The translations under genes and the position numbers were made by a program. A stretch of 64,000 nt of DNA. Origin: Monocercomonoides exilis PA203. Taxonomy: Eukaryota > Protista > Preaxostyla. Of this stretch, positions 482 through 57,726 are shown piece after piece (position 1 is the stretch's first letter; each line of letters begins with the position of its first letter). The notes under the pieces were generated by a model that was not told where the DNA came from, did no database searches, and saw nothing but the letters and a program-made list of their open reading frames with translations. The stretch is taken from positions 434,001 through 498,000 of the forward strand of contig LSRY02000030.1 of the NCBI GenBank assembly GCA_001643675.2, given 5' to 3'.

Positions 482-556
482 TATATGCTTATGTGTATGT
501 TTATATGTATGTTTATATGTATGTTTATATGTATGTTTATATGTATGTTTATATGT
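482..556 (+). repeat. 12-bp tandem repeat (TATGTTTATATG)n downstream of the receptor-like gene; mirrored at ~10642-10716
   Basis: About 5-6 directly visible units. Confidence 0.9.
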
Positions 557-9931: not shown

Positions 9932-11197
9932 TATTGTGAAAAACATATAATTTTGAGAAAATCCTTGAACAAAAAAACTGAGAAAAATGATGAAATGACT
10001 TTCAAATTTTCCGAATCTTTATTTTTGTCAGGACTGGTTGAAAATGGAAAAGAAGAGAAAGAAGAAAGGGGGATGGAGGTGAGTGCAACAATTACAGAGG
10101 GATAATAACATTTCAGTTCAGAGTGGAAGTGTTGTTGCAATTGGTTCATCAATGTGTCCTGCTCCGCAATAAGATTTTTAATAATCTGTTTGTTCAGTTC
10201 TGCTGTTGCCTAAAAAATTGTTTATAGATAATAATTTTCCATTTGAAAAATAAAATGATTGATACAATTTCTGGAAAATCTGTACGTCAATTATTTGTTT
10301 TTGAAAAACTATTTTTTTTTTCAGTCGGAACATATTCAGCTCACTTCAAAGAAGATCCATTTTCTGTTGCTTAAGACAACTTTCTCTTCGTTTGTTAACT
10401 TCATTGCCTGTCTTTGTCATTCTGCAAATTGTTGAGCATTCTTCGGCTTCGTTGTTGCCTTGCCAATGGAGCTGCGTGCATTGTCCGCCTGATCCGATTT
10501 ATAAAATACACTCCATATTCTTCTTTCCGAATATTCATTGAAAAGAAAAGGAAACAAACTGAAGTGATGATGGGGAACAAGCAAAACATAAGACACAAAG
10601 ACTTTTATCCCAAACACAGCCAACTATCACTACACTAACACACATATAAACATACATATAAACATACATATAAACATACATATAAACATACATATAAACA
10701 TACACATAAGCATATAAACAAGAATTTTGAATAAAAAACAAAAACTCATAGAATTGAAAATCAGCTTAAAAAAATTCAAAAAGACACAACAGCACTCTCA
10801 AGCAACAACAACAATATCACTTGTCCAATTTTTTTTTCTGTTTATAAAATACACTGCATGGCTCGCCATCTTCTCTTGATCACTGCACAAGAAGAACAAT
10901 CCGACTGCTTCCTTCTGTTCCTTCTCCGTTTCCGTTCCCACTTCCACAAGAGGGCTCCTTCTTGTTCCCATCTGCCGAATAGCAGCACAGCGCATCTGTC
11001 ATCGTCATTATCAACGATCCTGCCGGAAACCGCTGGATGAACTCTCTCTTCAACTCATTCAGGCTCCCCCGCTCTCTCCAATCCTGCGACACACACTTCT
11101 TCACCAGCCCCAGATAGCTCGACTGCTCCGCCTCTCCCATCCCTGGCCTCTCCCCATTCACAATCTTCTGCCCAGCCACTTCCCCTTCATACTCTCC
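9932..11197. repeat. Right arm of the long inverted repeat (partner 1-1266)
   Basis: Reverse complement of 1-1266, including the gene 3' end, the 12-bp tandem repeat and ~950 bp of downstream DNA. Confidence 0.95.
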
Positions 11198-26600: not shown

Positions 26601-29600
26601 TTGCCCCAAAATGCTTCTGAACAAAGAGAAAGATGAATGAATTCTTTTGTGCTCTTTGAGGAGCATCAGCTCAGAAACGCTGCGATGTTTGAGGAAAAAG
26701 GAAGGGAGGGAAGAATAACAAGAGAGAAGAGACTGGTTGGAGGTGGAAGAGAGAAGAAGGGAGTAGAGATCAGAATGGAATATGGAATTAGATAAAAGAG
26801 AAGAGGAAGAGGAAGAAGAAGGAGAAGAAGAAGAAGAAGAAGAAGAAGAAGAAGAAGAGAAAGAAAGCGGAGAAGGAGACAAAGGAACAGATGGATTGAG
26901 ACTGAAAGAGGAAGAGGTTGATGAAGGAGGCGAGTGTCTATTGGGAGATAATGGAGATAGCTGCATGTATCCAAATGGAGAAGGAATGAGAGAAGAATGC
27001 GAAGGAGCATAAGAAGAGACAGAAGACACAGCAGAAGTGCGGGAAAGCATCGGATTGAGTGAGCGAGCGGTGGAAGAAGCAGCAGAAGCAGTGGAAGAGA
27101 GAGAGAAACCAGAAAAACTGACAATATTTGTGGTGTTTGTGAGGTTTGTGATGTTTGTGGCATTGGAAACAACGGAAGACAAAGAGGGGGTGGCATATCT
27201 GCTGAGCACATCGTGTTCAACCAGCATGAATTCTCTTGGATTATCAGAAGAGGAGGAGGAAGAAGAAGAAGAAGAAGATATCTTCATGTTATTTTCATCA
27301 TCTGCATTGCCCAACTGTTCAGAAAGAGGCAGAGAATACGAAGAAGAAGAGGAATGAGCCATTTTGTGGTATTCTCTCACCAAAAGCACCACAATCAAGT
27401 TGATTGTCCTTTCATTGAACAGAAATCGTGTCAATTCGCTTCGAAAGACTTTGCCGGCAAGTTTTTTGCTTTTGTGGGTGAAAGAAGGAGAGGAGGCGAA
27501 GAGAGGAATTATTGAGGGAAGTTTAGGAATATAATTAGCAAGAGAAGAAGAGGAAGAAGAAGAAGATAATGAAGAGGAAGAAGAAGAGGAAGAAAGAGGA
27601 GAAGATGGAGAGAAAGAAGAAGAAGAAGAAATGTTCTTTCTAGGTGAAGGGAGAGGAGAAGCAAGAGAATTCTGTGAAGAAAGCAAAGGAGAAGAGTAAA
27701 GAAGTCTTGAATGGGGCAATAAAGACATAGAGTGTTTCTTTATCTGCTTCTGCAGTTTTGGCAGAGGATTAAACGAATAAAGAGGAAGAGAATTAACAAG
27801 AGACAAGACTGAATGAAGTGTTTTCATTGAGAAATCGATTAAACCAGACAAAACAGAATCTGTTAGACGGCAGAGGGAAGAAGAGATGAAAGGATGAGTG
27901 AAGGGAGAAGAAGGAGAGAAGAGGAAGAGAGTGTTGGAGAGAGAAGAATTGTACTTCCAGATTTGACAGAAGGGAGAAGAAGATGAAGAAGAAGAATTTG
28001 AAGTTGATGATGATGATGATGAAAATGACAAAGGAACCGAATTTTCTTCGTCTTTAAATGCTTCTGTTGAATCTGGCTTTGTTTGAACAGAGTATGATGT
28101 GTCAAACACTGAATGGGGGATTAATTGTGAAAGGCAGTCCAATATAGGACGAATAGAACATGCAACAATTGTCAAAAGGAGAAGCTCTTGTTTTAGAGAG
28201 GAAGGAGGAGGAGGTACAATAACAAATGAATGTGAGGATAGGGAAGAAGAGGAGGAGGAGGGGGAAGAGGAAGGTGAAAAAGAAGAGGAGGAAGAAGAAG
28301 AAGATAAAGAAGTGGAAGAATGAGAAGAAGAAGAAGCAATAGAATTCATTTGCAAGTGCATTTGATGAGATTGCTGAGATGTCCAACTGACAGGATTATC
28401 ATTCACTCCAATGTCATCATACACAGGAACATTCATCTTATCTGTCAGAAATGAAGAAGAGGAAGAGGAAGAAGCAGAAAGAGAAGAAGAAAGAGAAGAA
28501 GGCAAAGAATGATTATTAAACTCATTAGCATTTGCATAAGAATTAGAATTCGTATTTGAATTAGCATAAATGTTAATGCCAATATTTGCATTAGAATTGC
28601 TCTTCTGCATAAATCCATCTCCCACCTGATACAATCCATTGTCATTCATTGAAGAAGAAGAAGAAGAAGATAATGATAATAATGAAGAGGAAGATAAAGA
28701 TGATTTATAAATCCAATTTTCATTCCCTTCAAACATCACATCAGCATCATCCACACCATTTTTCTCTCTCTGCTTCATCTCAGCAACTGAAAGAGGAAGA
28801 AGAGAAGAGAAGAGAGAAAGACACAAATTTACGTTCACAATATGCTCATTGCTCAGTTCTTTGAATGGAGGAGATTGAAGTTGTTGATTGGAATTAGGAT
28901 TGTTTTGAATGGAATTATCAGAAGAAGAAGTCGATGTTCTTGTATCATTTCTATCTATTTTATCTTCTTCTCTCCTTCTTTTCCCTTCCTCTTTCCTCTT
29001 TTCTTCCTCTCTCTTCTCTTCTCCACGTGAATCACAAACATCAAATCCATTCTGCACAATAACAGCAGACAATAAAGAGAAGAACAGAGGTGTTCGAAGA
29101 GAATCTCTTATTCTCAGCTGAAGAGAAGGAGAAGAATAAGAGAGAAGAGAAATGATTGTGCGAAGAGTTAGTTCTGTCTCCATTCCAATGGGAGAGAAGG
29201 GGAGAGTGGTGATGGGGAGGGATAAAGTGAAGGAAGAAGGAGAAGAAGAATGAAGACAATGAGAATGGGTAGAAGAAATATGTGATGATGGATATAAAGA
29301 TAAGCATTTATTTGTACGTTTTGTGTAGAAATAAGGAGATTTATGCATATTTGAATGGAACAATTGAGTAAAATCAGAAAATTTTGAATTTTTTCCTCTT
29401 TTTTCATCAAAAACCCCACAAATCTTTGGCAATTCATTCAAATTTCCATCAAATTTATTGTTTTCTCTCTTCAATTTTTGAGGCAATTTCATCTGATTCA
29501 CCGAAGAAAGAAAAGCAAAAGGAGAAGTTTCAACAGAAGAAGGGAGTGGAAGATCAACAGCAAGTTGTCTATTGTTCGTGGGAACTTCGAATGAAGAGGA

Positions 29601-32600
29601 AGGAAAATACAATTTGGAAGAAGGCGAAGAGAAGAATGTGTTGGAATATCTGTCGCAAAAGAGAAATTGTTGAGAAGAAGATGATGAGGAAGAGGAAGAG
29701 GAAGATGATAAAGAGGAAGAAGATGATGATGCTAACATAGAATAAGCATTCAACGTATCATTCTTCAATCTCTCAAACTCTGTTTTCTTCTTCTCCTCCG
29801 CCCTTTCAACAGCATTTGCCCACAAACACCACATTTTCTGGACGAAAAATGAGAGGAAGAAATGTCCATTGAATCCGTTCATTTTGAACACATCATCCGG
29901 AAGCAGCTGATGATTAGCCTGAAGTTCATCGTTTGTTGGGAGCATCTTGCGGACAATGCATTTGTTGAGAGAGGAGAAGGAAAGAAAATAAGAAGAAGAT
30001 GATGATGATGAAGGCATCTGAATATACACTTCATCTTCGAAATAGATCGAAGGTGAAGACAAAAGCTGTGATGGAATTGAGCACATCAAACGTATCTTCT
30101 CATCTTCATCTTGAATGTCTTGAATGTTTGCTAGCAAATCTTCTTGACTCTTCATCTGCTCTTCATACGCATTTTCTTTTAGTTCTTCTTTGTATAACTT
30201 TTTGGTTATTTCATTATCATTATAATGTTCTTCTTTTCCCTTTCCTTCACTTCCTTCTTTCTCCTCCTTCTCCTTCTCCCTCTCTTCCTCATTCATCGTA
30301 TTCCTTCCTCTTTTATTTGCTTGCACATGCTGTTCAAACCAGAAAGGATGAGTGAAGAAGGAAAGATGCTTCACAATTAGATCTAATCCATTCATTGGAA
30401 GAAGAGCAAAAGATGGATGAATTTGAGGTTGTGCACCAATCATTGAAGAAGAAGAAGGAGAAGAGAAAGAGGAAGAATATAAATCTGTTGAGAAGGTATT
30501 TGATGTTTGAGCAAACTTTTGTAAGAAAGAAGAAGTTGAAGTAAAAAGAGGAGGAAAACGAGAAGAAAGAGAAGCAAAATTGCTCATGAAAAGCGATGGT
30601 TGCTTCAAATTACTCTCAAAATACTTCACATTCCCATTAGCATTTCCATTTGCATTTGTACTAATATTCCCGCTTCCATTCCTTTCTCTCTTCCCTTCCT
30701 TCATTGCATTCACATTCGAATTCACATTCACATTCATATTCATCTCATTCACTCCATTCACTCCATTCACACCATTAACCCCTCCTCTATTCCCACTTCC
30801 TCCATAAACATCTCCCCATACAACTCCACTCCTCTTGATCTTCACAGGCACATTGAATGAAACATCCCTCAACACATTTGGCTGCCAATTCACACCCACA
30901 AACATGTCATCTCCGAATGTTGCCTCGAAAGAGAATGGATTGTCCCCTACAACAAGATAGCGCTTGCGTCTTCTGCAGTCAGATTCAAAGAGACTGCTGG
31001 TGAAGTCAGTGCTCAAGGAGGAGAAGGAGGAAGAGGAAGAAAAGGATGAGGAGGAGGAGGAGGAGGAGGAAGATAATGAATAAGGCATTATTGAGCTATT
31101 GGAATCTTCAATTCTACTTATTTCTTCATTTCCATCATCATCTTCCTCTCCTCCATTTTCTCCTCCATTTTCTCCGCTCCCTTCTCCTTCCATCTGAATC
31201 CTGCTCCACCCATCCCTCTTCGCAGTGTACAGCAAAGAGCTTATTCTCAACATGATTCTCTGTGAAACCGCACTCACTGGAGGCAGATAAGCCAGTGAAG
31301 ATAACAGAAACCTCATATCCTTGCCAATCAGCGTCTCCTCCACAAAGAAAGTGGAAAGGCCTCCGTTGAATGCCTCATTCACGAGCATCTGGATGACCAC
31401 AGGGGAAAGTGTTTGATAGGTGGCAGTGAGGCTGAAGGAAGAAGGAAGAGAAGAAGAAGAAATACTTCCTCTATTTCTTCTTCCATTAATTCTTGCTCCT
31501 TCTTCTTCTAATTGATTATTATCTTCTCCATTCCCCTTCATCATCTTCGCCATCAACGCTTTGTTATTATTGCACTGCAACTTCCTCTTCTTGTTCCATT
31601 CTGCAATGTGATTGTATCTCTCAACAGAAGAGAGCAAATTGAAGGCTGATGCCCAGATGTTTATGTTCTGCTTGATTGGAAGAGGAGAAAGAGGAAACTT
31701 TGGAACAACTGCAGAGGCACTGGATTGGGTTGAAGAAAGAGGGAGAGAAGAGAGGAAAGCGAGGAGGATTTGGTGAGGGGTGAAGGAAGAGGAAGGAAAA
31801 GAAGAAGAAGAGGAAGAAGAAGAGGAAGAAGAATTTGGAGAGAGAAAAGGAAGAGAAGGAGAAGGAAAGACGGAAGGAGAGGAAGAAGAGGGGAAGGAAG
31901 ATAAAGGAGAACAGTTTGGTGACAGTGTGATGGTGAAATTCTGAGAAGGAGTTGAAGTGAGTTGAAGTTGAGAAGAGGAAGATGAAGAGGAGGAGGAAGA
32001 GGATGAAGGAGAAGAAGATGATGAAAGAGAAGGAGAAGGAGAAGAAGGAGAAAGAGGAAGAGAGGAAGAGGAAGGAGAAGAAGGAGAAAGTGTTGGTGAA
32101 TGATTGGGAGTGGAGGAAGGAGTTGAGATGCCAGCAAATGCCGAAACAGAAAGAGAAGAAGAAGAAGCAGAGGAAGATAATGAAGAAGAGGAAGAAGAAG
32201 AAGAAAGAGAAGAAGAAGAAGAGGATGAGGAAGAAGAGGAAGAAGAAGATGGGATAAGAAGAGCAGATGAAGAAGAACAAGGTGAAAGATGAGGGGTGAC
32301 ATCATAGTTTGAGAGTTCATCAGAAGAAGTAGAGGAGGAGGAAGGAGAACATAAGGAAGAAGAAGATGATGATGATGAAAGAGAGAAAGAAGAAGAATCA
32401 GAAGAAGATGAGGAAGAAGAAGAAGAAGAAGAAGAAGAATATTGTTGGTTCACAAACAAAACATCACCTTTTCGTCGTGTGTTTATTTCGAGTGCAGAAA
32501 GAACAAGAGGAAGAGATTGATCGATTAGAGAGCGAATAATGTTGGTGCTATTGGAAGCATTGGAAGAAGAGAGAGAAGAAGAAGAAGAGGAAGAAGACAA

Positions 32601-35600
32601 TGATGAATGATAAGGCTGATGAGAAGAGATGAGGCGAGTGAAGATGTGAATGCAACCAGATATGGCTGAGTCACAACGGAGCGAAAGCGCATGGAGAAAA
32701 TGATACTGCAAATGGAGATATTTTGGAATGTGGTGGAAGAAGAAGAGGGGAGGAGAAGAATTGGAATGTTTGGAGAGAGAATTTTGAGAGGGAGAAGAAG
32801 AAGAAGAAGAAGAAGAAATATGTTCTTTCATTTCTTCTTCTTTCTCTTCTTTCTCTTCTTCTTTCATCATTTTATTTCCTCTTCTATTCTTCTTCTTTTC
32901 TATCAGCTCATTCAAAACCTCCAACACATCGTTCATTTCAAACACATTTGTTGGTAGTGTTTCATCCACTGAATTAAACCCAACATCACAATATTCCTTC
33001 CAATAATCGAATTCTTCTTCTTTTTCATTTTCTTCTTCTTCTTTCATTTTATCTTCCGTTTTTCTTTCTGCTTCTTTGTTATTATTCCCTTCTCTTTCTC
33101 TTTCTCCTTCACTTCCAATCTTCCCCTGCTTATCATTCCATTCATTCTTCAGTCTATTTGAACTCGCCACAATTGCTGATCCTCTTCTCAAATGTCTTCC
33201 TTCTTCTCCTCCTTCTCTTTCTTCTCTCTCTTTCTCTCTTTCTCTTTCTCTTTCTTCTTTCTCTCCTTCTCTCCCTTCCAATCCATCATTCAACATGTTA
33301 TTCCCACTGCTATTAACACCAGAAACAGGAGCAGAAGCAGAAATAGAAACAGAATTTGAGCTTGAATGATAACAGGAATTATTACTTGAACTAGAAACAG
33401 AATTAAATCCAGAGTTATAACCAGAAACAGAGCCATATCCGAACGAAAGTGGGTTTCTATGCAAACAATGGAATGGCTGAAGAAGCGAAAGAGAAGCAGA
33501 AAAACAGCTGAAAAGTTGATTTCTTTGCGACTGCTGAGAAACAAGATGAGAAAAAGAAGTCAGAATTTCGAACAATTTTGGCTGGAAACGATGGAGTTGG
33601 GAGTGGAAGAAGGAGGAAGAGAAGAGAGGGAGAGAGGAGGAGAGGAGGAGATGGAGAGAGAAGGAAGGGAGAGAAGAAAGAGGAGAAGAAGATGATGATA
33701 ATGAAATTCCAATGTCTTTTTCTTTCACACCTTCATTAGATTTATTAGAAGATGAAATAATTGAAGAAGAAGAAGAAATTGAAGAAGAAGAATTATGAGA
33801 AGTTTTTTCCATTTTAATGCAGCTAAACATCCTATTCAGTGCAAAAGCAGGGGGAGAAAGATACAAATGGAAGATGAACGGGGAAGATAAATCGCACAGA
33901 TGATGATGGATGTGAAGAGAAGAGAAAGAAGAGAAGAGGAAAGTATAGAGAAGCTTGAGAGTGAGGGAAGTGAGGGTGATGTGGAGATGAGAGAGAGAGG
34001 AGAGGGAAGAGAGAGAGGAGAAGGAGAGAGAAGGAGATTTGGGGGAGATGAAGGAAATGGATGAAGAAGAAGAAGAAGATGATGATGATGATGAAGGATT
34101 AGAAGAAGAAGAAGGAGAGGAAGAAGAGGAAGAAGATGATGATGATGAAGCAAGTAATGATAACAATGAAGATGAATTGAAAGAAGAATTAGGAGAAGCA
34201 AAATCCTTTGAGGAAATAAGTGAGCCTATTGGGAGAGAAAAAGAAACAGGAGAAGGAAGAGAAGGAAGAGAAGATGAGGAGGAAGAAGAAGAAGAAGAAG
34301 AAGAAGACAACACAAAAGATCCATAATTATTTCCCTTCTTCTCTGCATAGCAACCATTTCTTCCAACTCCATAGAGTAAATAGAGAAGAGCGAAGTACAA
34401 CTTCAAAGAATGTGTTTGTTCGAAGAGTTTGACGAGGAATGAACGAGAAAGCAGAGAAGATACAGAAAGAGAGAGGAGAAGGTGGAGGGCGAAGGAGGAA
34501 GAGGCGAGGAGAGGGAGGAAGAAGGGGAGAGGAAGAGAAGAAGGGTAGAGAAGAGGAGAAGAGGAGGAGGAAGAAGAAGAAGGTGAAGAAATTGAAGAAG
34601 GAGAAGGAAAAGAGGAAGAGGAGGGAGGAAAAGAAGAAGAAGGCAATTCTGTTTTTGATCGAATATGAGAAGAAGATCTGTTAGAAGAAGAGGATAAATG
34701 AGGAAGAGGAGAGAAAGGAGAAGAAGAAGGAGAAGAAGAAGAAAGAGAAGAAGAAAGAGAAGAAGAAAGAGAAGAAGAAAGAGAAGAAGAAAGAGGAGGA
34801 GGTTGAAGATGAATGTTTTGTATGCCAATCCATTTGAGATGGAGGTTGAAGACACAAATGATAGATTGGAAATAAGAAGAATAAATAGAAGAAGAAGAAG
34901 GAGAAGGAGAAGAAGGGGAGGAGGAGGAAAAGGAAGAGGAAAAGGAAGAAGACGAACGAGAAGAAGGAGAAGAGGAAGAAGAAAGAGGAGAAGAATTCAT
35001 GATTTCATTGAAGAGTTTTGTGTTTTGAATGAAAGGAGGAACGGAAAACAAGTTTAATGGCTTAATTTTAGCAAAACGAGAAGAAAATGAAGAAGAAGAG
35101 GAAGAAGAGGAAGAGGAAGAGGAAGAAGAAGAAGGAAACGAAGAAGAACGAAGAGAAGAAGAAGAATTGAATGAAGAAAGATGAGGTTTTGAGGAAGAGG
35201 AAGAAGAAGATGATGATGATGAAGGAGAGGAAGAAGGAGAAAGAGAAGAAGAGAGGGAGGTGATATCAAGAGGAGTTGGTTTGTGAAGAGATAAAGTGGA
35301 TGAAGAAGAAGAAGAGGAGGAAGAAGAAGGAGAAGAAGAAGATGATGATGATGATGATGATGAAATAGGAGAAGAGGTGGAGGAAGAAGAAGAAGAATTG
35401 ATGTCTGTTGAGTTTTGTTTGGCTGGTGATATGTATGGAGTGTTTAGAGCATTGTTCATTGAAGAAGAAGGAGAAGGAGAAGAAACTGGAGAAGAGGAAG
35501 AGGAAGAAGAAGAAGAAGAGGAAGAAGAAGAAGAAGAAAGAGAAGACAATGCAGGATCATCATAATCATTGATTGAAGAAAGAGAAGAAAGAGAAGAAAG

Positions 35601-35981
35601 AGAAGGATCAAAAGTGGAGAGAGAAGTGATGAAGACAGAAATAAGAGATTGAGTGTTGACAAGAAGAGGAAGTAGAGAAGAATGAACAAGAAGAGAAGAA
35701 GAAGGAGAAGAAGAAGAAGATGATGATGATGATAAAGGAGAAGGAGAGGAAGAAGAAGAGGAGGAGGAAGAAGAAGAAGAAGAAGACAAAACGAAAGAAG
35801 GAGAAGGAGAAGAGAGAGAAGGAGAATGAAAAGGTGAAGGTTTTTGAGTTTTCTTCAGCAATTTTGCGTTTTTTTCTTCATTTTTCTTTCTTTTTTTCTC
35901 TTCTTCTCTTTCTTTTTTGGATAATGCTGCTAATTCTTTTGAATTAGGCTTCATAGAAGAAGAGGAGGAAGAGGAAGAGGA

Positions 35982-36020
<39 letters not shown>

Positions 36021-39000
36021 ATGAACAAAAGCAGACATAGAAGAAGAAATACTGTTATTATTATTGTATTTCACTTCATTTGTGCCATTTTCAATCAATT
36101 GAGAAAGAAAGAGGAAAAGAGGGGAATAAGAAGAAGTTCTAAGGAATGAATGAGAAATAAACTGGAGTTTGCAGAGAAGAGAGAGAAGAGAGAGGAAATG
36201 AGAGAGCTGAGGGAGAAGATGAATGTTTGGGAGGGGAGGGGAAGAAGAAGAAGAGGAAGAGGAAGAAGATGAAGATGATGATGAAGGAGAAGAAGAAGAG
36301 GAAGAATATGAAGAATATGAAGAAGAAGATGATGAAGAAGACATTTGAACATTTGGAGAAGAGAGGAAGCGAGAATGAAGAGAAGAATGAGAGATGAATG
36401 AAGAGTTCTCAATAGAAGAAGATGATGATGATGATGATGTTTTAAGAGCAGATAAATAAGAAGAGGCAAGAGAAAGGCTGGTTTCGAGGGATTGGGAGAG
36501 TAAATAGACGAATGGAGAGGGGAAGAGAGAGGAGGAGGAGGAGGAAGAAGAAGAAGAAGAAGAAGAAAGAGAAGAAGAAAGAGAAGAAGAAAGAGAAGAA
36601 GAAAGAGAAGAAGAAAGAGAAGAAGAAGATGATGTTGTTGTTGTTGTTGATAAAACAGAAGATAAAGATTGAGATGTGTTAGAATCTTCACTCATATTTT
36701 GACATATCAAATTTTTATCTGTCATTTTGATTTCTTCTTTTCCTTCTTTCTCCTCTTTTTCTTTCAGTTCTTCTTCATCTATTTTGCATATCTGTTCCAT
36801 CAAATACACAAAATAATTCAAAATCCATTCATTTTCACACAAATTCTGCAACAAAATGAGCAAATTTTCAAAAAATTCCGCATTTCGCTGTAATTTCTCC
36901 GTTTTTCCGGTGCTTAACAATGAAATAAATGAATAAAAGCACGAAGAAAGAGAAGGAACCAGGTGAAGAAGAAGAGAAGAAGACAGAAAAATCGGAGGAG
37001 GGGTTAATTTTGACATGTATGTCAAAATAAATGGAAGTGGAGAAGAAGATGGTAAGCAAAGTGATGAAGAAATATCAGTTGAATTCTCATTTATTGGATT
37101 TTTCTTTGAGACTTCTTCTGAAACTGCATTGTTTTCTTGGATGGTTGTTATTTCTTCTGTTTCTTCCTTCTTTTCTTCTTTTTCTTTCCCATTATCATCT
37201 TTCACTTCATTAAAGTCTTCACTAACTTTTTCTTCTTCCTCATCATCTCCATCATTAAACATCAACTTATCCATCTCCAGCTCACCAGAATTAACAGCAT
37301 TTGAGCACAAATGCATAAACAATGGAGAAACAACCCTCAAAAACGTAAATCTGAAAGATGTTCCCCAAAAGGGGGAATTTTTGTATTTAATTGTGTTAAA
37401 AATATAAGTTGGGACCAAAAACACGAATTCTGCCGGCAAAGTGAGCAGAAATTGTTGAAGAGAAGAAGAAATATCTTTGACGAAATCTGATGAGGATGAA
37501 GAAGAAAGAGAAGAAGAATTAGAAGCATTTAAAGAAGAAGAAGAAGCTGATGATGATGATGATGATGAACATAGCGTATTTCCCTCTTCCACAGTTGCAT
37601 CATCATCATCATTTGTATGAGCCATCAATAACTCCATCATTTCACTCCCTTCTTCTGAACAAAAAGCATTCTTCATCTCGTCCAAACACGAATAAATCGT
37701 CTTCATCTGCTTCTTCGTCAAAAGAAGAGAAGAAGTGAACATCGGGAAATTATCATTTGTTAGCAACATTTGTGTTCCTGAATCATGTTTGATTTTGTTC
37801 AGATGCTTTGCTAATCTGTTCTTCTTCTTCTTCTCTTTCTCTTTTTCTTTCTCTTTCTTTTCTTCTCCTTTTCCTTTTCCTTCTCTTTCTCTTTCTCTTT
37901 CTCTTTCTTCTTCTTTGTTTTCTTCTTCTTTTTCTTCTTCTTTCTCCTTTCCTTCTTCATTCATCAAGCACATTTCACACAAATGAAGCATTTCTTCATT
38001 CATTTCCTCTTCCTCTTCAAACATCTCATCGCATTCTTTGTTCTCTTCCTCTGCTTCTTCTTCTTCTTCTTCCTCTTCCTCTTCTTCCTCATCATCATCT
38101 TCTTCATCTTCATATTCATATTCATATTCTTCTTCATTATCATATCCATTTTCTTCTTCTCTTTCTCTTCCTTCTCTTTCTCTTTCTCTTCTTCCCTCTC
38201 CTCTCCTTCTTCTTCTTCTCCTCTTTCTTCTCTCTCTCATTTCATCCCCTTCATTCATCTCATCCATCCATTTCCCTGCAAAGCTCTCTAAATATGGCTC
38301 CATCTGCATTAACATCTTCATCTTCATCTGTTTATTTGAATTCACTTTATTCTTGTTCTTCTTTTTATTTTTATTCTCTTCTCTTTCTCCTTCTCTTTCT
38401 CTTTCTCCTTCTCTTTCTCCTTCTTCTCTTTCTTCTCCATCTTCCTCTTCCATTTCCATTTTTATTTCTTTTTCTATCTGTTTTTCAATCACAAACAGAA
38501 TTTGCTTCAAAACAAGTGGCTGAGATTGCATCCCATCCAAAAACAAGCCCTTTTGAGAGGATTTGAGAGAAGAAAGAGAAATGTCATCATTTGTGGATGT
38601 GGATATGGAAGGGAGGAGAGAAGAGAAGAGAGAAGAAGAAGAAGGAAGAGAAGAAAGAGAAGAAAGAGAAGAAAGAGAAGAAAGAGGAGAAGAAGAAGAA
38701 GGAGAAGGAGAAGGAGAAGGAGAAGGAGAAGAAATGGAAGAAGAAGAAATTGAAGAAGAAGAAATTGAAGAAGAAGAAATTGAAGAAGAAGAAATGGAAG
38801 AAGAAGAGGAGTAAATAGAAGAACGAGAAGAAGGATAAACTTGCATGAATGAAGAGATGAATGTGTGGAGCATAGCAAGAGGAGAAGGAGAATGGAAGAG
38901 CGGATCAACACACAGACATTTGATGCACTCTTCACCAAATGAAACAGAATGGAGGGTATTTGAAGAATGAGATGAGGAAGAAGATGATGATGATGAAACA

Positions 39001-39456
39001 TCTTTGGATATGTCTTTTTTCTCCTCTTCTTCTCTCTTCTTCTCTTTCACTCCACATGCAGAAAATGACACAAAATCATTCTGATAAATGTCGTGCAAAT
39101 GAGGAAGAGAAGAAACATCGATGAAGGAGAGGAGAGAAAGAGAAAGAAAGCAGAAGAAAGAGGAAAGACGAAGAAGAATTAGAAGATGAGATGGGGTGTT
39201 GGTGATGGCTGAAATGAATGAAGAAGAAGATGATGATGATGAAGAAGGAGAAGAGGAAGAAGAAGAAGAAGAAGAGTAAGAAGAGGAAGAGGAAGAAAGA
39301 GAAGAAGAAGAAGAAGAATGAGAAGAAGAAGCAAAAGAAGAAGAGATGATAAGTCTGATGAAATGTTCACCGCCCAAATAGCAGAAGGCAGCAGCACGAA
39401 GAAGAGTGGAGCAGATGAGAGAGCAACTGAAATGTAGAGAAGATCTGATGGAAGAA

Positions 39457-39488
<32 letters not shown>

Positions 39489-41583
39489 GGAAGAAGAGGA
39501 AGGAAATGAAGTGGAAGAAGATGTTGAAGAAGAAGAAGGTGATGATGATGGTGAATTTAATAAACAAGATGAATCCTGCATATTTTGATCAAAATCACTT
39601 GGAAAGTTTCTGAACACAATATTTGGCTTGCTATTTTTATTTTTATTTGTTTTTCTTTTCTTTTGAGAAGAAGGTGTTTGAAGAGGGAAAAGAGGCATCA
39701 GATGAGTGATGAGGTTGCTAAGCAGGATGATCAGCTTGTCATTGGAAGATAATATTGATGATGAAGAGAGGGGTGAAAGGAGAGAAGAAGAAGAAGAAGA
39801 AGGTGATGAAGAAGATGAGGAAGCAGAAGAAGAAGCAGATGAAGATGAAGATGAAGAAATAGAAATAGAAGGAGGAGAAGAAGAAGAAGAAGAGGAAGAA
39901 GAAGAATTAACAGCATTATTAATAGTGCAATTGATGGCATCAACAATATCCATAATGTCATTGAAGTCAATAACATCTGGAGGAAGCTTAATCATTTCCC
40001 TTGAAATTATTTCTCTGTTTTGTAAAGAAGAAGAGGAGGAAGAAGAAGAAGAAGAAGAAGAAGCATTTTCTTCCATATTATTTGACAGATCTCTTTGTGA
40101 AGAAGAAGAAGATGATGATGATGATGATGATGCTGTTCCCAATCCATTCTCTTCTTCATCACTTTCTGTTTCTTCAGAAGAAAGAGATGTTTGTGTATGA
40201 GATTGAGAATGGAGTTGTGATGTTTCTTCTGCTTCTGATTGAAGTGACTCTGAAGAAGAAGAAGAAGAAGAAGATTTCGATGAAGAAGATTTTGAAGAAG
40301 AAGAAGAGGAAGAAGAAGAAGAAAGAGGAGAAGGTTTAAACTTCTCATTCCCCTCTGGTGCTGATGATGACATCACTCTTCTGTGCTTCTTAATCCTCAA
40401 CGAAGTAAATGACCCAAATCTCCCTCTTTTCCCTTCTCTTTCTTCACTTTCATCGTCCAATGAATCAATAGCATCTCCATATAACTCCAGATTCATCTCA
40501 CGTATGATTGTCGCATCTTCCTCATCATCATCCTCCTCCTCCTCATCTTCATCATATTCACAATCATCCCCGTTCCTCTTCCTCTGAGCTGCCAGCTCTG
40601 CTTTCCTCTTCTGTGCTGCCTCTTCTCCGCCTTCTCCTTCCTGTCTGAGCTCAATCTCCGCCAGACTCTTTGCCGGCGGCTTCTTCCGCATCTCCTTGTT
40701 CACTTTCTTCCCATCTATCGATCGCAGCTTCGTCTGCCTCAGCGCATACACAATGTGGTGCTCCAGCTCCTCTGCACGGTACTCGTACAGAAACGGGTTC
40801 GCCTCCACAAACAGCTTCTCCAGCCGCTGGAAAGTGCCGAGGATTGTGAGGTTTGACTGCATTTCCGTTGGAGTCCACGAAAAATAGTTGTACGAGATAT
40901 TGAGCGATATCAATGAACGCGTAAGGTGAAGAATGGGCATCAGGCTTCCACTTATTCGATTGTGAGAAATATCCAATATACGCAGTGCCACATGACTAGG
41001 CAAAACAGGAATGCTCCTTAGCTGAAAAATATAAATATAAATAAATAAAATTTTGAAATTTAGTGAAAAACATTTGTCAATTTTTGGAAGAAGATTGTTT
41101 TTAAAAAAATAGCCAACTCTATTTTTCTGAACATAAATTTCTTCGACAGCAGGAATGCCTTCGAGAGAAATTGTCCTTAACGAATTTGAATCCAGCCAAA
41201 TACGCCTCAATCTTGGAAATCCAAGTTTTGACTCCATTTGATCATTACTAGCTTCGCGGATGTTAAATGTTTTCAATTTATTGCCGCTACATATTTTTAA
41301 AGAATGAATTGATTGAAATTCGAAGAAGAAATTCACACCTTAGATCAATTTCTTTAACAAATTGAACAGGTAAGCACGTTCCAAAAGACTTCGCTGAAGT
41401 GAGCATAAATGCTGTTCTGCCTTTGCATTGGCAGGTATTGTTCATACAAATATAGACTGGATATTGTTTTGCAACCACATGACTCGCTTTCATCAAATCC
41501 TGTAATATGTCAGGAGTGATTTGATAAACAATGTGTTTGATTGGTTTTATGCAAGAATGCTTATGATTAGATCTGTCTGACAT
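23661..41583 (-). CDS. ~5,900-aa protein with N-terminal leucine-rich repeats and massive poly-Ser and Glu/Lys low-complexity tracts; introns 41287-41338 and 41022-41117
   Basis: 17.6-kb open frame. LRR motifs EIDLSGNKL, RIWLDSNSL, ILDISHNRI, SLNISYNYF, KLFVEANPF. Removing two GT-AG introns (52 and 96 bp) restores the LRR register and gives an ATG at 41583. Confidence 0.85.
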
Positions 41584-45028: not shown

Positions 45029-46896
45029 TTAGGAGCATCCCACATTCTCTGTAATTTTTTCCTCTTTTATTTTCTCGATCTCCATTAAACTTTCTCTCAT
45101 ACAGCTGCTGAAGAAATTGTTGTCACTCGAAGAAAATGTGCTGGCAGTTGTAGATGAGGCGAATGAGATCCACCCGCCATTGGTGGCAGTCTGAAGGTTT
45201 TGTGGAGCTGAGTCGATGCTGGTCATGGTGCAATTGGTGAGGGAGAGGGAGAGGGCAGGGGAGGTGGCAGAGGAGAGGACACAGCTGGTGGGGGTGGCTG
45301 TGGAGGTGATATCGGTGATGTTGGAGGAGTTGAGGGTGAGGGGAGCGGTGAGGGAGGTGAGGTGGAAGATGCTTTGACTGTTGAGGGTGAGATGAGTGAT
45401 TGCTGTGTGGTTGAGGGCGAGGGAGCCAGCAGTGAGGAAGAAGAGGGGAGTTTTTATTGGAATGGAGGTTGTTCCGGTGATGGTGGTTGTGTTGAGGTTG
45501 AGGGAAGGGGAGTTACCGGAGAGGTGGAAGAGGATGGGGGTGATGGGATTTGTGGAGTTGTGAGCGATGGCGAGGGCAGAGACAATAAGGGAGCCCTGGG
45601 TCTGTTGGAAGAGGGCAGAAGCGGAAGATGGACCTGGTGAAGAAGACATTGATGATGATGATGAAGGTTGAGGAATGTCACTGGAGGCGATGGTGGTGGC
45701 ATCTGTTCCGTTTCCTGTGATTTTCAAGTCAGCTGCGCAGAATGTGAGAGTTTCTGTTGGGACAAATGTTGAGTTTAAGAGTGTGAGAGAGACGTCTTGG
45801 GTATCTGTCATGCGAACAAGAGCGAATTCAATTGTTTCTCAGTGACTGAGTTGCGTGATTCCGCAGAGATCGGTATTTGTTCCATTATTAGACACAATTT
45901 TGAATGTTGTAATGAGAGGGAGCCATCTGTTATAATCGTTATTTGTTGCTGTTTCGCAGTTCCAGACTCTTTTTGCTTTAGTTGTTGAACCATAATTTTC
46001 AAATGGAGATTGAGTGATGCTGCTTCCATTGAAAAACACTTCATTTCCTCTTCCACTATTTGCTGTGTTATCGAAGAAACAGAATGTTATGAATCTTATT
46101 TCATTCATCCAAGGAAAAGTTGAATAGAAGTGAATACCAGCTCCACCAAGAGATGATAACGAGTTGTTCAATTTGTTATTTAAAAATTGACATTCACTAA
46201 CTGAAAAATTACTTGGTTCGCTTCTTGGAGGATCAGAAAAAGTCAAAGAACCAGCAGAATCACCACCGGAATTTGAAATGCACTTGCATTTGGAAAACAA
46301 GAATTGAGCATTTGACGACATGTTTTCGAGTTTGAAATACCGACCAGTTCCACACCTACTTGTTATTGAACAGCTTTCCACCTTGTTATCTGAAAACGTC
46401 CAAACAGAATTTGATTGAGGCCAGCATACATAAGCAGCTCCTGCATGTAATGCCAAACAATTTGTAAAATTAGATGTTGTGATGTTTACATTTGACAAAG
46501 TTTGAACGAACAACGCTCCACCATGATCACCAATCGAACATTTGCTGAATGAACATGAAGTGATTGCGAGATTGGCAATTGCGAAAATAACTTTAAGTAC
46601 TCCTCCCCAATCATTTCCTTCATTTGTATTTAACTATGTGCACCATTCAAATTTGTTGCTGTTCAGTCCGAATGAAGTGAATCTTCCTGACGTTGCTCTT
46701 TTATTTTCTGATCCTTCGTGTATCATAGAAGCATTTGATAAAGAGCGCGTTTGGTGGAAGAAGGAGGTGTTGAAGACAAAGAGAGATTTGTCGGATCTGT
46801 TGATGGAAGAGATGACAAATTCGTTGATGGAACTTTGAGTTTGCTGGAAGTGAAAGCTGTTGATGGGAAATAGAGAGAATAAATAGATTTGATCAT
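45029..46896 (-). pseudogene. Frameshifted, truncated member of a Cys-rich beta-helix surface-protein family (N-terminal modules only)
   Basis: Collinear ORF fragments (NTSFFHQTR, FEWCT, DHGGALFV..FTNC, FITFCFF..GSTT..RVW, DLCGITQ). Paralogous to 52834-54190 and to the N-terminal module of the 3072-aa protein. Confidence 0.75.
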
Positions 46897-47723
46897 AGAT
46901 ATTTAATATTTGTTTGCGAGAAACCCTGAGGATGGAGAATGCAATGAATGTGAAGCATCCAAAGTAAAAATGTTTGTAGAATTCGGAACATGTTAGAAAA
47001 TCGTATAATCGGTAAAATAAGAAGATAAATATCGAAAAAGAAAATATTTTCAAAAAAATATAAAATGTTCTTTATAAAAAACGAAATCTTGAAAAAAAAA
47101 CCATATATTCCTTTAAACATTCAGTGTTTTATATATTTCTTGTTAATGATTTTTAACATTGTTTATCAACAAGGCGAAAAATGAAAAACAATATTGTTTG
47201 TAAATTGCTGTTGCTTAAATCGAAAAAAGTAGTAAATACCAAGTGAGGACTGATCAAAACGGAACAGAAGTTGTTTTTGGTGCTCCAGTTTAAAGAAACA
47301 GTTTGCAATTGCGAAGAAACAGACAAAAAATTTGATGAAGCTTTTATGATTTGTATATTGGGAAAAATGAATTTTTAATTGTTAAAACCATGCATACTCG
47401 CATTATATAACTCATGTTTTTGATAACATAAGTTGGAATAGCATTTTAAACGAATTATCGAATTATTCTATTTTTTCGAAGAAGATTATTGAAAGATCAT
47501 AATTTTTGCAAAAAGAGAATCAAAATTAACTTCAATATTTCATATTAATCTTTTTTGCAAATTATTTAATGTTATCTGTTTTCATGTTTTGAACATTCAA
47601 TTCAAAATAGGATGAAGATTCAGTCACTCACAATTCATGTTAATTGTTAAATGTTGGCAACAATGATTCTTAAATTATTATGGTTTCTTCGGTTAAACAT
47701 ATTTGTCTATCTTTTTGCTGGAA

Positions 47724-51810: not shown

Positions 51811-52525
51811 ATAATCACAGAGACCAGAAATATTTTTATAAATGGGTCATATTTTTTGAAATCATATATTTTTTCCGGGAATTGATTTTTTAATAATTGT
51901 TTGTCAATGGGAAGTGTTTTTGTATTCAGATGATAAAATAATCACAACTGTTTCAAAAACAAATGTTGAAACAGAAATAAATATAAAGATGTCTTTTATT
52001 AGCCTAATAACTATTCAGTGTTAACGTGTGAAGATTCATGCAAAAATTTCGTTTCGAAAATTCTGTATGAAAAGATGTGATCTTATGAACAATCTCCCAC
52101 ATTACGTGTTGAAGATTTATTAGAAACACTATTTATGAAAGCCTTTTAATGTGAAGAATCTGCAGATGCTTTCAATGAATTCTTTAAGTTTTAAATTTTT
52201 ATAATAATTCTTGTCACAAATGCGAAACAAACAAAAAAAAAAAGCATAATTTCAGGAACATCTTTCAGTTAAATAATGATGAGTTGAGCTTTACTCTTCT
52301 GATTTGTTCATATTGCTGGATTGGGATTCAAAACAATTCAATTTCTTCACTTTTTTTCTTCGATAATGATACAGCAGGATACTGGGAAAGTGTTTCGTGA
52401 ACTTGTTCACAAATACGGAACGAAAGACAGCCAGTTATTGGATGCGAGGGAATTGCAGTAAAAATTGACGAAGCAATATAGCGAAAATTGAAAAACAGAC
52501 GAGGAAGAAAGAATCAGAAAATAAT

Positions 52526-55500
52526 GCATAAGTGTAACAAAACACCTCCTCCAATTTCATGATTTCATTCATGATAATAAATGGGAATGAATAACATAAA
52601 AAAACAACACTTTTTGGTGGAGCAGTTTTTTAAGATATCAACATAAAATATCAAGAATAAATATTTGTGATCTGTCCCATAATTAAATTTTTTATTAAAA
52701 CTTTTTTGCTTTAAACTTTAATGCCTGCAAATTGAAAGTTAATCTTTGGATTTGATAACACAATACCAAAACACTTCACAAATAAGGTGTGAAATTTGCA
52801 CTTTATCGTTGTTATTAAAAGTTATTTTTTTGTTTGAAAAATGTAATTTTGTTGGATTTTTCTTGTTCATTCAACAAATGTTCGGTAAAAGATCATTCCG
52901 GAGCGTTATATTGCAAAAGTTTAAATAAAATTGAAATCACAAAATCCAATTTCACAAATTGTTTGGTATCACATAGAGGAGCAGTATCAAAAATTACAAA
53001 TCCACAAACGAATTCTGTTCAGTTATTATCAGATAACAGAGTGGAAAATAGTTCAATAACAAATTTGTGTTGAACTGATTGGTGTTTTCCGTTTGGTGAT
53101 TTTCCATCAAACGGAAAATTTCTATTTCCCAAATGAAAGTGTATAGCTTGAACAGGAGGAAATGCGGTTTGTTCTCTCACATTCAATAGACCTTCACAAA
53201 ATAAAGCAAATCAATTTTTGGTCAATGATTTCCGATTGACAAATAACAAATTAATAGCCTCTATCACATATGGAGGTGCTGCCACTTATTTTTATTCAAC
53301 TTATTCCTGGATGAATTGTGTAAAATTCATCACATCCTGATTCTTTGATGGCGACACCGCCACTAATAGCAATGGAAACGATGCCTTTTACAATGGCAGC
53401 AGTGTCACTCAATCCCCATTCAATTAGTGGGATCAACTACCCCAACAAAAAGAGTCTGGAATGCAGGAACAGCTTTCAACGCCGTGCACAATAGCTGGCT
53501 CAATCTCATCAACCAGAACAAAATCGTTGGAAACAACGAAACTGACGACAATACATATGATCGAACGCAGGAAAGCCCGTTTGATCCAATCGAGAATATT
53601 TTAAGGTCCATTGCTCCCTTCAGTGATGTCTCCCTCTCTCTTTTTGCCTCAATATTTGTTCCCACTCAAACGCTCTCTTTCAGTGCGACTGCTGCAAAAA
53701 TCTCTGGAAATGGAACAATTGCACCATCGTTTGAATCTTCATATGACGTTCATAAACAAAATTCATGCACATCATCATTTTATATTCTCAAACTTTGACT
53801 CTTCCTCCTCTTCCTCCTCTTCCTCATCTTCCTCCTCTTCCTCCTCTTCCTCCTCTTCCTCCTCTTCCTCCTCTTCCTCCTCTTCCTCCACTCTCATTCA
53901 GATCTTCAATTCACCTTCTTCGACTTAATCGCAATCTTCTGTTTTTTCCTGTAATCTCTCTCTTCTCCTTCAATGCCCACTCCCCTGAGAATTGGCTTTG
54001 TCCTCTCCATCAAAAACCCATCTTTCAGAGCGATATTCATCATTCACACAGATTCTGCTTGCTTAATGAGGCCATGTACCTGTGAGTTATTGATTTTAAC
54101 ATCAAAAAGAAGTCCCTCCACACTTCGAACTCTTCAAGTACATCCTCAGAAGCTCTTTGTGAAGAACCAACTTTTCAAGGTGAGTCAACCATAGAAGTCT
54201 CCTTTTTTGCATCTGCAGCTTCCATCATTCGACAAGACTCATCCATACTCTCCTCGTCACTGCCAAACTTCCTCGCAACAATGAAATCGTCAGAGCATTC
54301 GTAATGCCTTGTTAACGACTTGAACCTCCTTCCTTATTCGCACTTTAACAACTTTCTCATATGTTCAGCTATTTCTTTCAGACAAACATATTCAAGTTCG
54401 CTTCATGTATATGTTCACCACATTTCATTAAACAAAAATAGTTTAATTTTATAATATCATCTGTTCTATCAGAAAAATTGATTAATAAAGAGATAAAAAA
54501 GTTGAAGCTAAAGATAGGAAATAATAAGTATTTTGTCAGAAAAGATGAAATAATGAAAAAGATAGATGAAATGAGATTGTTTATGTTGTGGTTTGTTTTT
54601 CTGTTTTCATTTATGGAAGTGTGTCAATAGGTTTTGAAAATTTCTCATTTTTTGTTGTTCGCTTGAGGTTTAAAAAAGCAAACATTTTTTCATTTCATCA
54701 AGAAAATAAAAATTGGATCATTTTTTTCTGTTTATGAACAAGAAATGGGGCAAAATATTTTGCTTCAAGCATTTTCAGAAAAAAAATATGCACTTTTCAT
54801 TGACTTTTTGAGGAAAAAAAACACAAAAAAAGGGTCCATTTTTTGACATTCGTGAAATGTTGAAAAACCTTTTGTTTTTAATACAATGATCTCTGTTTAC
54901 GGATATTTTAATCAAAATTATTTCAAAATCTGAGAAAGCGAAATAAAGTTATGAGCGAAACAATTTTTTCATGCTTTGTGCATTAAAAGCTTGAAAAGCC
55001 ATATTTTCCCCCAAATATATTCGTAATTTCAGAAGTTTTCATTTTAGACATTTAAACTTTATGCAACATCAAAAAAATCATCTTGACATAACTTTCTAAT
55101 TAAAATACAGAAATCGTTTATCACTAAAAAAGACGATCACATACGAATGAAATGAGATAAAAATCAAATTATCAATATATATATAAACTAAATCAAATGG
55201 AACGTTAATGATTATCTTCATTTCACTAATAATCTTTCTTATTAATAAAAATAAACTCCAGATAAACAAGTTTTTTACTTTAAAAAAACGAAAGATTAAT
55301 TCAATTCGTTTGCAACAACTTCTTAAGCTTAAAAAGTGTTAACATTTTCGAAAATAAATTGGATGAATATGTGGATGTTGCAATTAAGAAGGTTATTAAA
55401 AAGTTTTTAGCATTGCACTTAAAAATAACAATAAAGTGCAAATTTCACACCTTATTTGTGAAGTGTTTTGGTATTGTGTTATCAAATCCAAAGATTAACT

Positions 55501-55711
55501 TTCAATTTGCAGGCATTAAAGTTTAAAGCAAAAAAGTTTTAATAAAAAATTTAATTATGGGACAGATCACAAATATTTATTCTTGATATTTTATGTTGAT
55601 ATCTTAAAAAACTGCTCCACCAAAAAGTGTTGTTTTTTTATGTTATTCATTCCCATTTATTATCATGAATGAAATCATGAAATTGGAGGAGATATTTTTT
55701 TACACTCATAC
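52526..55711. mobile_element. Non-autonomous Mutator-like (Pack-MULE-like) element with ~280-bp TIRs carrying a host gene fragment
   Basis: 52546-52806 is the exact reverse complement of 55431-55691, with imperfect extension to G52526 and C55711. GAAAATAAT(G) is directly repeated at 52517 and 55713. No transposase was seen inside. Confidence 0.8.
52834..54190 (+). pseudogene. Captured, decayed surface-protein ectodomain fragment (cargo of the TIR element)
   Basis: FNKCSVKDHSGALYCKSLNKIEITKSNFTNC and GSTTPTKRVWN..WLNLINQNKIV align with 45839-46560. Followed by a poly-Ser tract (TCTTCCTCC)n at ~53800-53890. Many stops. Confidence 0.75.
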
Positions 55712-55979
55712 TGAAAATAATGATTTGTGATTCTAAACCTTACGAAGGAGATGGAATTGGAAAGCATTTTATGATTGATGTTCCCTACAGAAAAAATGGA
55801 AACTTTTATGATTATTTTCCAGAAATGCAAAAATGATGGCAGATTGATATTCTCAGATAAATTATTAATTATTTTTTTTTTGCAAACACTTTGATGAAAG
55901 GATAAAACTGCACACCATGAAAGATAATTCAGATGCAATGAAACAAAGGTGTGCACATGTTTGCAATTGAAGGGAAATA

Positions 55980-56433
55980 CAGTCAAAACCGGATATTATC
56001 ACATCGGTTTTTGCACAACTTTTTGTGACTATATCCGATTGTGTTGATATTCGATGTGATATAACACAGAAGAGAATAAAAATTTATTTTTGAAATAATT
56101 AATTTTGGGTCAAATTTTTCATTTTTGAAAATCCTTCATGAAAACACTTTTTTTTAAACTTGCGAAATTAACTTTTTTCATTAATACATATTATTTTGAC
56201 TTATTTGAGCACATTTTTGAAAAAGCGAAAAATCAAAATTTTTGATCATAAAATCGATTTTTCATTGAAATAATCTCCTATAATGAAATATATTAAGATT
56301 ATATATTTTAAGCCCTGTAACAATATTCGATGGAAATTGAATGAAAAATCAGCAAAAAAATGTCAATGCATGGAAAAATGTAACTGTAAACGAATGTGAT
56401 TGTATTTGATGTGATTGTATCAGGTTTGGATTG
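55980..56433. mobile_element. 454-bp Tc1/pogo-type MITE inserted in the Merlin pseudogene
   Basis: Left TIR CAGTCAAAACCGGATATTATCACATC vs right TIR (revcomp) CAATCCAAACCTGATACAATCACATC; TA at 55978-55979 and 56434-56435. Confidence 0.78.
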
Positions 56434-56763
56434 TATCCACATTTGGGATGTTCTTTTCAATAATTTGTTCTAAAGATTAGATTGATGAATGACTATCTGA
56501 CACTTTTAAAAGTGAAATCAATGCTTGATTTAACCTTCATCCAGTCCGTGAAATATTTGTGCATTGAAAAAGAAATTGCACCCGTTCAAATGAAAGAAGA
56601 AGAAGAAGAAGATGTGATTACAGATAAAAATGAGGAAATACCAGAATTAGAAGATAAAGCCAATGGTTATGACATTATTAAATCAAATGAAGATAAAAGA
56701 GCTGGATATGGGGCTAGTGCATCTGAATATGATAAAAAAAATATTTTGTAAATATTTAAGCCA

Positions 56764-56938
<175 letters not shown>

Positions 56939-57397: not shown

Positions 57398-57401
57398 TAT
57401 A

Positions 57402-57609
57402 TGGCTGATCCTTTTTGAAATTATACTTTCGTTCGAGTTTTGATCAAAAATTTTATTTCAATGGGATTTTCGAAAAGATTTTTTTTTCTTTGAAATATCT
57501 TCATAAGATGTGCGTGTTCTCTGTTGTGGTTCATTTATTCGAAATCCCATTGAAAACAAAGTTTTGATCAAAACTCGAACGAAAGAATGATTTCAAAAAG
57601 GATCAGCCA
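57402..57609. mobile_element. 208-bp MITE with ~75-bp TIRs
   Basis: TGGCTGATCCTTTTTGAAAT..CTTTCGTTCGAGTTTTGATCAAAA..TTTCAATGGGATTT is mirrored at the right end; TATA on both sides. Confidence 0.85.
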
Positions 57610-57726
57610 TATAGTCAAGTTACTGATAAATATGAACGCACCGATGTATTTGGATTATGTTGAATACGGTTGAAAAAGGCTATGCGAAATTCGATTTGTA
57701 AATATCCAATAAAGACTGCAATTATA

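Follow-up and report, generated by a model that had tools for sequence, protein, structure and literature searches.

Transposons of the Merlin superfamily (Feschotte 2004, cited after PMC8101967) are recognised by terminal inverted repeats (TIRs) of 24-462 bp, a terminal 5'-GG and target-site duplications (TSDs) of 8 or 9 bp, and the only survey of Monocercomonoides sp. PA203 described seven Merlin families, all with 8-bp TSDs (PMC8101967). We analysed 64,000 nucleotides of Monocercomonoides exilis PA203 (contig LSRY02000030.1, positions 434,001 to 498,000), hereafter the window, in whose coordinates unprefixed positions are given, and report a non-autonomous element of ~3.2 kb at 52525-55712 that holds a broken fragment of a host receptor-kinase gene between its TIRs. 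An earlier note, made from the sequence alone, had regarded this element as a Pack-MULE, i.e. a gene-capturing, Mutator-like element (MULE). In its terminal 5'-GG, 8-bp TSDs, long TIRs within the 24-462-bp range, DDE_Tnp_IS1595 transposase of the autonomous members and host organism, the family instead resembles the Merlin superfamily (PMC8101967). It departs from the published PA203 Merlin families, which are described as having one transposase gene each and mostly 23-29-bp TIRs (PMC8101967). The text of that survey does not use the terms 'non-autonomous', 'MITE' (miniature inverted-repeat transposable element) or 'additional ORF' (open reading frame), and no mention of host-gene cargo was found in it; nor was the family's terminal 10-mer found in the text of its supplement, which is weak evidence, that text being partial and its alignments gapped.

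That DNA transposons can carry host gene fragments has been amply shown for Mutator, CACTA, Helitron and hAT elements, chiefly in plants, and the gene-capture reviews concern Mutator, CACTA and Helitron. Like plant Pack-MULEs, the window element is a non-autonomous TIR element with a host fragment between its TIRs that appears to have been mobilised in trans and amplified to many copies (Jiang et al. 2004, after PMC6431247). Unlike Pack-MULEs, it belongs to a family with 8-bp rather than 9-11-bp TSDs and an IS1595-type rather than MuDR-type transposase, in which the fragment is already present in the autonomous element and the same segment recurs family-wide. Non-functional host gene fragments are likewise carried and spread in CACTA, Helitron and hAT transduplication (PMC6431247, PMC13317346), but the family from which the M. 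exilis fragment derives has more than 1,700 loci in the host, and the fragment appears to have been replaced repeatedly. We found no published description of host-fragment carriage by Merlin elements or in a metamonad.

Another parallel is offered by Ac/Ds-type pairs, in which an autonomous element is accompanied by its deletion derivatives. The short elements described here are similarly colinear with an autonomous one except for an internal deletion of the transposase; unlike in Ac/Ds, the part that they retain includes a host-derived fragment with a mosaic history. The window element is very probably an internal-deletion derivative of a Merlin transposon, from a family whose ancestral passenger cargo has been repeatedly replaced by versions from the host family.

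Termini and superfamily assignment

The genome searched was the Nanopore assembly of M. exilis PA203 (82,301,135 bases in 101 contigs; PMC8767320), and the census of elements is partial, copies being defined by BLAST with the TIR of the window element. This TIR is multicopy, as the earlier note had expected, with 41 scored genome matches and no fewer than 14 paired copies, which measure 2.5-3.9 kb. The essential observation of a surface-receptor ectodomain fragment inside a multicopy, TSD-flanked TIR element holds. A pattern search of the genome with the family termini, allowing 2 mismatches, returned a single site.

Perfect 8-bp TSDs flank 15 elements: besides the window copy, these comprise nine of its sisters, four autonomous elements and a nested element belonging to a second type. 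In these 15 the ninth base matches only at chance rate. The TSD of 9-10 bp implied earlier is therefore not retained: the 10-bp repeat of the window copy consists of the 8-bp GAAAATAA plus two chance bases, T and G, which on the left are the element's own first two bases (T for the consensus G, then G) and on the right are host bases. The repeat GAAAATAATG flanks the window element on both sides. Family termini are conserved as GGCATAAGTGTAA...CC; the window copy reads TG.../...CT at its ends, against GGCATAAGTG...CACTTATGCC in the family, and these differences are taken as later substitutions.

The inverted repeats, previously estimated at ~280 bp, are real but longer. Counted from the family termini, the TIRs measure 294 nt with an identity of 285/294 (Table 1); the arms 52528-52818 and 55419-55709 form an inverted repeat of 291 nt with 98% complementarity, and the exact run of 261 bp seen earlier lies at 52546-52806. 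Six of the nine mismatches fall within the terminal 21 nt. Over its last 21 nt, the right TIR shows five differences from the family consensus, every one a transition.

The interior contains no transposase, in agreement with the earlier description: Pfam gave no match among the nine ORFs internal to the element, and comparison with Merlin transposases returned only noise (E > 0.3), with no transposase remnant. Transposases are found in its relatives. A genome scan for PF12762 (DDE_Tnp_IS1595, the Merlin/IS1595 catalytic domain) gave at least 575 candidate sites, several of them adjoining weaker TIR matches. Four autonomous-type elements (C38, C25, C27 and C48) share the first 13-18 terminal bases of the family and have TIRs of ~180 bp and perfect 8-bp TSDs. 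The copies C48, C27 and C63 have an ORF of 642-669 aa between their TIRs that matches PF12762 at 63-67 bits (cut-off 27), and the transposase frame is shorter and broken in C25 and C38. Where the earlier note had suggested looking for an autonomous MULE transposase with the same TIRs, PF12762 was the only transposase found in partners sharing the termini of the window element. The C-terminal region of the transposase (element positions ~2190-2800) contains a (KEEKEME)n coding repeat whose length varies from copy to copy and explains much of the difference in ORF size.

The two TIR subfamilies meet in a hybrid element, C48 (L060:1896-8397; G000 C48:349895-356396), with a perfect 8-bp TSD, CTTAGTTC. 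In its 5' half it is of the C25/C38 type (~98% identity), whereas the 3' half and right TIR belong to the window type. By combining a TIR from each subfamily with a perfect TSD, this element ties both subfamilies to one mobilisation system, and the shared termini suggest that the family's Merlin transposase may transpose these ends.

With 8-bp TSDs, a terminal GG in the family and DDE_Tnp_IS1595 between the same TIRs, the window element is a non-autonomous member of the Merlin (IS1595-like) superfamily. The Mutator or Pack-MULE class given to it earlier does not stand in view of the 8-bp TSDs, the GG...CC termini and the Merlin transposase of the autonomous relatives; TSD length, transposase type and a cargo that is not specific to the element all differ from that class. 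Assignments to the Mutator, hAT or P superfamilies were rejected.

Three copies, L031, L040 and L041 (G000 C48:314734-317998, C91:1062827-1065337 and C91:1519985-1522490), are without a direct TSD and are embedded in larger inverted duplications. Their flanks are mutual reverse complements over at least 30 bp (~500 bp in L031), those of L040 including inverted Merlin transposase fragments on both sides, a pattern that points to palindromic structures on a larger scale or to homogenised TIRs of much greater length.

Descent by internal deletion

In the autonomous elements, the host-like segment lies downstream of the transposase and on the same strand. Two short copies, L042 and L043, match the C25 element at 79% identity over its positions 3591-6929 (~3.3 kb) and also in the TIR, and positions 226-3590 are missing from them. 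Between window-type copies and the C48 element, identity in the 3' half is ~60%, and in the window copy host homology starts at 52822, three bases past the end of the TIR. The short family is thus colinear with the autonomous elements apart from the loss of the transposase and, since those elements already carry the cargo, it represents an internal-deletion derivative without a capture of its own.

The whole interior, cargo included, is shared with the window copy by all 14 sister copies compared, with the exception of 54747-55012. The earlier idea that the window element had itself captured the fragment must accordingly be abandoned: in sister copies and autonomous elements alike, this segment is present and occupies an identical position.

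Identity and state of the cargo

Host homology is restricted to one block, which in the window copy spans ~0.9 kb and not the 1.3 kb first proposed, and in the C25 element lies at positions 3500-4400. The window cargo amounts to ~290 codons with four in-frame stops and one frameshift. The best preserved cargo, that of L033, is an open frame of 444 codons, 100% identical to MONOS_10244 of M. exilis, and modules of this type occur at no fewer than 1,724 genomic candidate loci. The L033 frame shares 67-79% identity with the first ~410 residues of long open frames (2,000-3,100 aa), and shorter frames of 450-1,290 aa match at the same level. All database relatives come from M. exilis; among them are 57 proteins with lengths of 1,340-2,659 aa, the majority having a C-terminal PF07714 kinase domain.

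A Pfam search of the cargo gave no match, and Foldseek found no significant match in the PDB for its structural model. This model, predicted from a 23-sequence alignment, has a predicted local distance difference test score (pLDDT) of ~90 over residues 1-200 and matches right-handed parallel beta-helix proteins, which occupy all top rows of a VIA-align comparison (Z 10-14.5). The source of the cargo is a Monocercomonoides-specific family of receptor-type kinases of 2,000-3,100 aa with an N-terminal beta-helix ectodomain. The fragment begins ~120-150 residues into the host protein and is devoid of the host N-terminus, signal peptide and own start codon.

The cargo thus has the features of a captured fragment, comprising ~290 of 2,000-3,100 codons in one block between TIRs and being mostly broken. 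Stops or frameshifts occur in nearly every copy; the cargo is frameshifted in C38, C63 and C27 and truncated in C48, and three autonomous copies with open transposase frames also have a broken cargo. Because it is broken in nearly all copies, we regard the cargo as a passenger and not as a working gene.

A gene at 45.0-46.9 kb had been singled out as the host paralogue. It is indeed a related family member, without TIRs and grouping with host proteins in the tree, but its candidacy as donor was ruled out: it is itself broken and only ~61% (aa) or 67% (nt) identical to the cargo. Elsewhere in the window, a receptor-like gene of 3,072 aa (10880-20098) stands beside an open frame of 5,891 codons with serine-rich repeats (23661-41336, minus strand).

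Mosaic history of the cargo

The autonomous copies C25 and C38 are 96-100% identical except at element positions 300-900 and 3552-4348, the second block being coextensive with the cargo and only 66-78% identical. The first block (68-81% identity) lies upstream of the transposase and shows no host-protein homology in the sample. The best genome matches of the C25 cargo are host receptor genes at 82-84%, the C38 and C63 cargos reaching only 76-78%. The C38 cargo, in turn, matches that of C63 at 99% and that of C27 at 93%, after which come host genes (79-81%) and the cargo of C25 (76%). All top 39 matches of the L035 cargo are host genes at 77-82%, with no sister element among them. The window cargo, closest to a C5 sister (90%) and a C38 sister (81%) and at most 74% identical to host genes, is vertically inherited.

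When placed in a tree with a sample of 31 bona fide giant proteins of the host, the element cargos come out in three or more places among host proteins, and those of L035 and L044 are nested within host clades with supports of 100/99 and 100/100, respectively. Monophyly of all 16 element cargos was rejected (log-likelihood difference, delta lnL, 106; approximately unbiased test, p-AU 3e-05). Cargo boundaries are nonetheless constant (about residues 3-293 of the reference frame) in all copies but L033, in which a host-like tract extends ~125 codons past the usual end and the boundary segment is duplicated; its open cargo looks like a recent host-type replacement. That the boundaries stay fixed while the content changes speaks for overwriting, through ectopic conversion or template switching, more than for a fresh capture each time. 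Replacement itself is visible in the sequence pattern, to which its mechanism and timing can only provisionally be fitted.

A second cargo-carrying element was encountered nested in the C27 autonomous element. This non-autonomous, Merlin-like element of 2,400 bp (L067:6764-9163; G000 C27:192763-195162) has TIRs of 182 bp (95.6%) starting GGCATAGGTC and an 8-bp TSD, AATCGATC. Its cargo of 1.5 kb is a different receptor fragment, with 62% aa identity to MONOS_3976 and 63% nt identity to window 17466-18946, inside the 3,072-aa receptor-like gene. Since both its TIRs and its fragment differ, fragment carriage is not limited to one Merlin lineage.

Insertion site and assembly support

The earlier note had described the element as a true insertion splitting a Merlin transposase frame, and this is borne out by alignment. 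When 52524 is joined to 55721, tblastn alignments of the reconstructed empty site with eight Merlin transposases of the genome run across the junction, the insertion point lying directly after their first catalytic motif (VEIDE). Paralogues of the left flank, 73-80% identical, continue unbroken into PF12762 matches. A search of the right flank for the empty site, with the high-copy repeat excluded, found no DNA paralogue, and continuity is thus established at the protein level only. The excluded sequence, at 55975-56275, is a very high-copy short repeat. At least 403 candidates match it at 87-91% identity, and its word depth is the highest of the region.

Short-read contigs, assembled from four public runs of one sample of the same strain, bridge both junctions without differences (51938-52575, 52234-52580 and 55662-56003), and in contigs of sister copies the loose end starts exactly at 52526. 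None of the short-read contigs listed contains the empty-site joint; such contigs exclude assembly error and are silent on polymorphism.

The 266-bp MITE inside the element has TIRs of ~24 bp and an apparent 4-bp AAAT duplication, and its read word depth is 30-100x that of neighbouring bins. It is private to the window copy, the same site being empty in L031, L036, L037 and L039, and is a later insertion. Its derivation from the TIR of the host Merlin was ruled out, the repeats being different. At L031, the same MITE sequence lies to either side of the element, in inverted orientation. Two further repeats lie beyond the insertion, a long palindromic (AAT)n/(ATT)n microsatellite at 56762-56910 and, at 57398-57613, a MITE-like unit of 216 bp with 72-bp TIRs (93%) starting GGCTGATCC.

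Table 1. Coordinates of the window element, its parts and associated features, with the sizes of autonomous-type relatives.
Feature	Position	Strand	Remarks
Broken host-family gene without TIRs	45029..47053	-	61% aa, ~67% nt to cargo; groups with host proteins in tree
Interrupted Merlin transposase pseudogene, upstream piece	52212..52524	+	In-frame stops; ends just past VKIDEA motif
Left TSD copy	52517..52524	.	GAAAATAA; same 8-mer at 55713-55720
Left TIR	52525..52818	+	Family terminus GGCATAAGTGTAA; window copy starts with T instead
Cargo, pseudogenised receptor-kinase ectodomain fragment	52822..53765	+	tblastn against host proteins and L033 ORF
Low-complexity array, 9-bp period	53781..53915	.	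CTCTTCCTC
Element body, common to all family members	53916..54746	.	No host or transposase homology
Nested high-copy MITE, 266 bp	54747..55012	.	TIRs start GGGGCAAAATAT
Element body, remainder	55013..55418	.	Sister-copy comparison
Right TIR	55419..55712	-	Last 21 nt: 6 mismatches to left arm
Right TSD copy	55713..55720	.	GAAAATAA; matches left 8-mer
Interrupted Merlin transposase pseudogene, downstream piece	55721..55836	+	Alignments continuous over junction
Autonomous-type elements with family termini	C38 7,372 bp; C25 6,929 bp; C27 9,749 bp; C48 6,502 bp

Discussion

The family very probably goes back to an autonomous Merlin of ~6.5-7.4 kb, composed in order of a TIR, a DDE transposase of 642-669 aa, the ~0.9-kb receptor-kinase ectodomain fragment, ~2 kb of element-specific sequence and a TIR. 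Loss of ~3.3 kb, from the inner edge of the 5' TIR to the cargo, would have generated the derivatives of 2.5-3.9 kb, which keep both TIRs and were presumably moved in trans by the family transposase, with formation of 8-bp TSDs. The window copy inserted into a dead copy of another Merlin family, afterwards gaining the 266-bp MITE and its terminal mutations. Over the history of the family, the cargo has been replaced repeatedly by other family versions, because well over a thousand host genes resemble it at 70-84% identity; the likeliest route would be ectopic gene conversion or a switch of template during repair.

Several points weigh against this history. The first and last bases of the window copy depart from GG/CC, and its own TSD, taken alone, could be anything from 8 to 10 bp long. 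It is the shared termini, rather than transposition seen directly, that suggest mobilisation in trans. Window-type copies are only ~60% identical to the body of the autonomous elements, so their descent is ancient. As to the cargo, the tree covers only 31 of more than 1,700 host loci, and the contrast between C25 and C38 could be explained if old element lineages had recombined with one another. For none of the replaced cargos did the search find a host donor of more than 84% identity, which falls short of demonstrating recent conversion from one particular donor.

Other explanations fare less well against the same data. The long TIRs, the host-derived cargo and the apparent 9-10-bp flanking repeat of the window copy would all suit a Pack-MULE, a non-autonomous Mutator-like element that made its own host-gene capture; we consider this extremely unlikely, given that the window copy and 14 others have TSDs of exactly 8 bp, that autonomous relatives sharing its family termini encode DDE_Tnp_IS1595 and no MULE transposase, and that the cargo is already present in autonomous elements and all sister copies. 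That the structure might be an assembly artefact or a chance inverted repeat was worth considering for a long-read assembly with many repeats, but hardly any credence can be given to it when short-read contigs agree with both junctions and more than 14 paired copies occupy separate loci, each with its own TSD.

The persistence of the cargo calls for closer weighing. Its position is kept in autonomous and non-autonomous members despite deep divergence, and L033 retains the 444-codon frame annotated as MONOS_10244, as might be expected of a functional second transposon gene encoding an accessory protein under selection. This is very improbable, however, as stops or frameshifts affect nearly all copies, autonomous ones included, the fragment lacks both a signal peptide and its own start codon, and the open L033 version resembles a recent host-type replacement. 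Independent de novo captures of a receptor fragment in each lineage would account for the polyphyly of element cargos among host genes, and the separate Merlin-like element with other TIRs and a different receptor fragment lends them some plausibility; yet identical cargo boundaries and flanking element sequence throughout the family are not expected from independent capture, which we judge quite unlikely. The reading retained is that of a Merlin internal-deletion derivative from a family whose inherited cargo has repeatedly been overwritten by host-family versions.

For the genome of M. exilis, these results carry a warning for annotation, some 'uncharacterized proteins', e.g. MONOS_10244, being transposon cargo. 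The genome paper reported 35% 'unclassified repeats' and linked them to the kinase family (PMC8767320), and cargo-carrying Merlins help to explain part of this fraction. A further step would be to see Merlin elements as a two-way shuttle for ectodomain modules of the receptors, the largest gene family of M. exilis, in which the host overwrites the cargo, the direction to which the present data point, and mobile fragments seed receptor genes at new loci in return. We hold this to be a doubtful extension, but, if true, mobile fragments would add to the diversification of more than 1,700 receptor-kinase ectodomains via gene conversion or exon-like insertion. With a cargo that resides in the autonomous element, is inherited by its derivatives and belongs to a host family with well over a thousand almost identical modules, these transposons provide a natural system for the study of ectopic recombination between mobile and resident copies.

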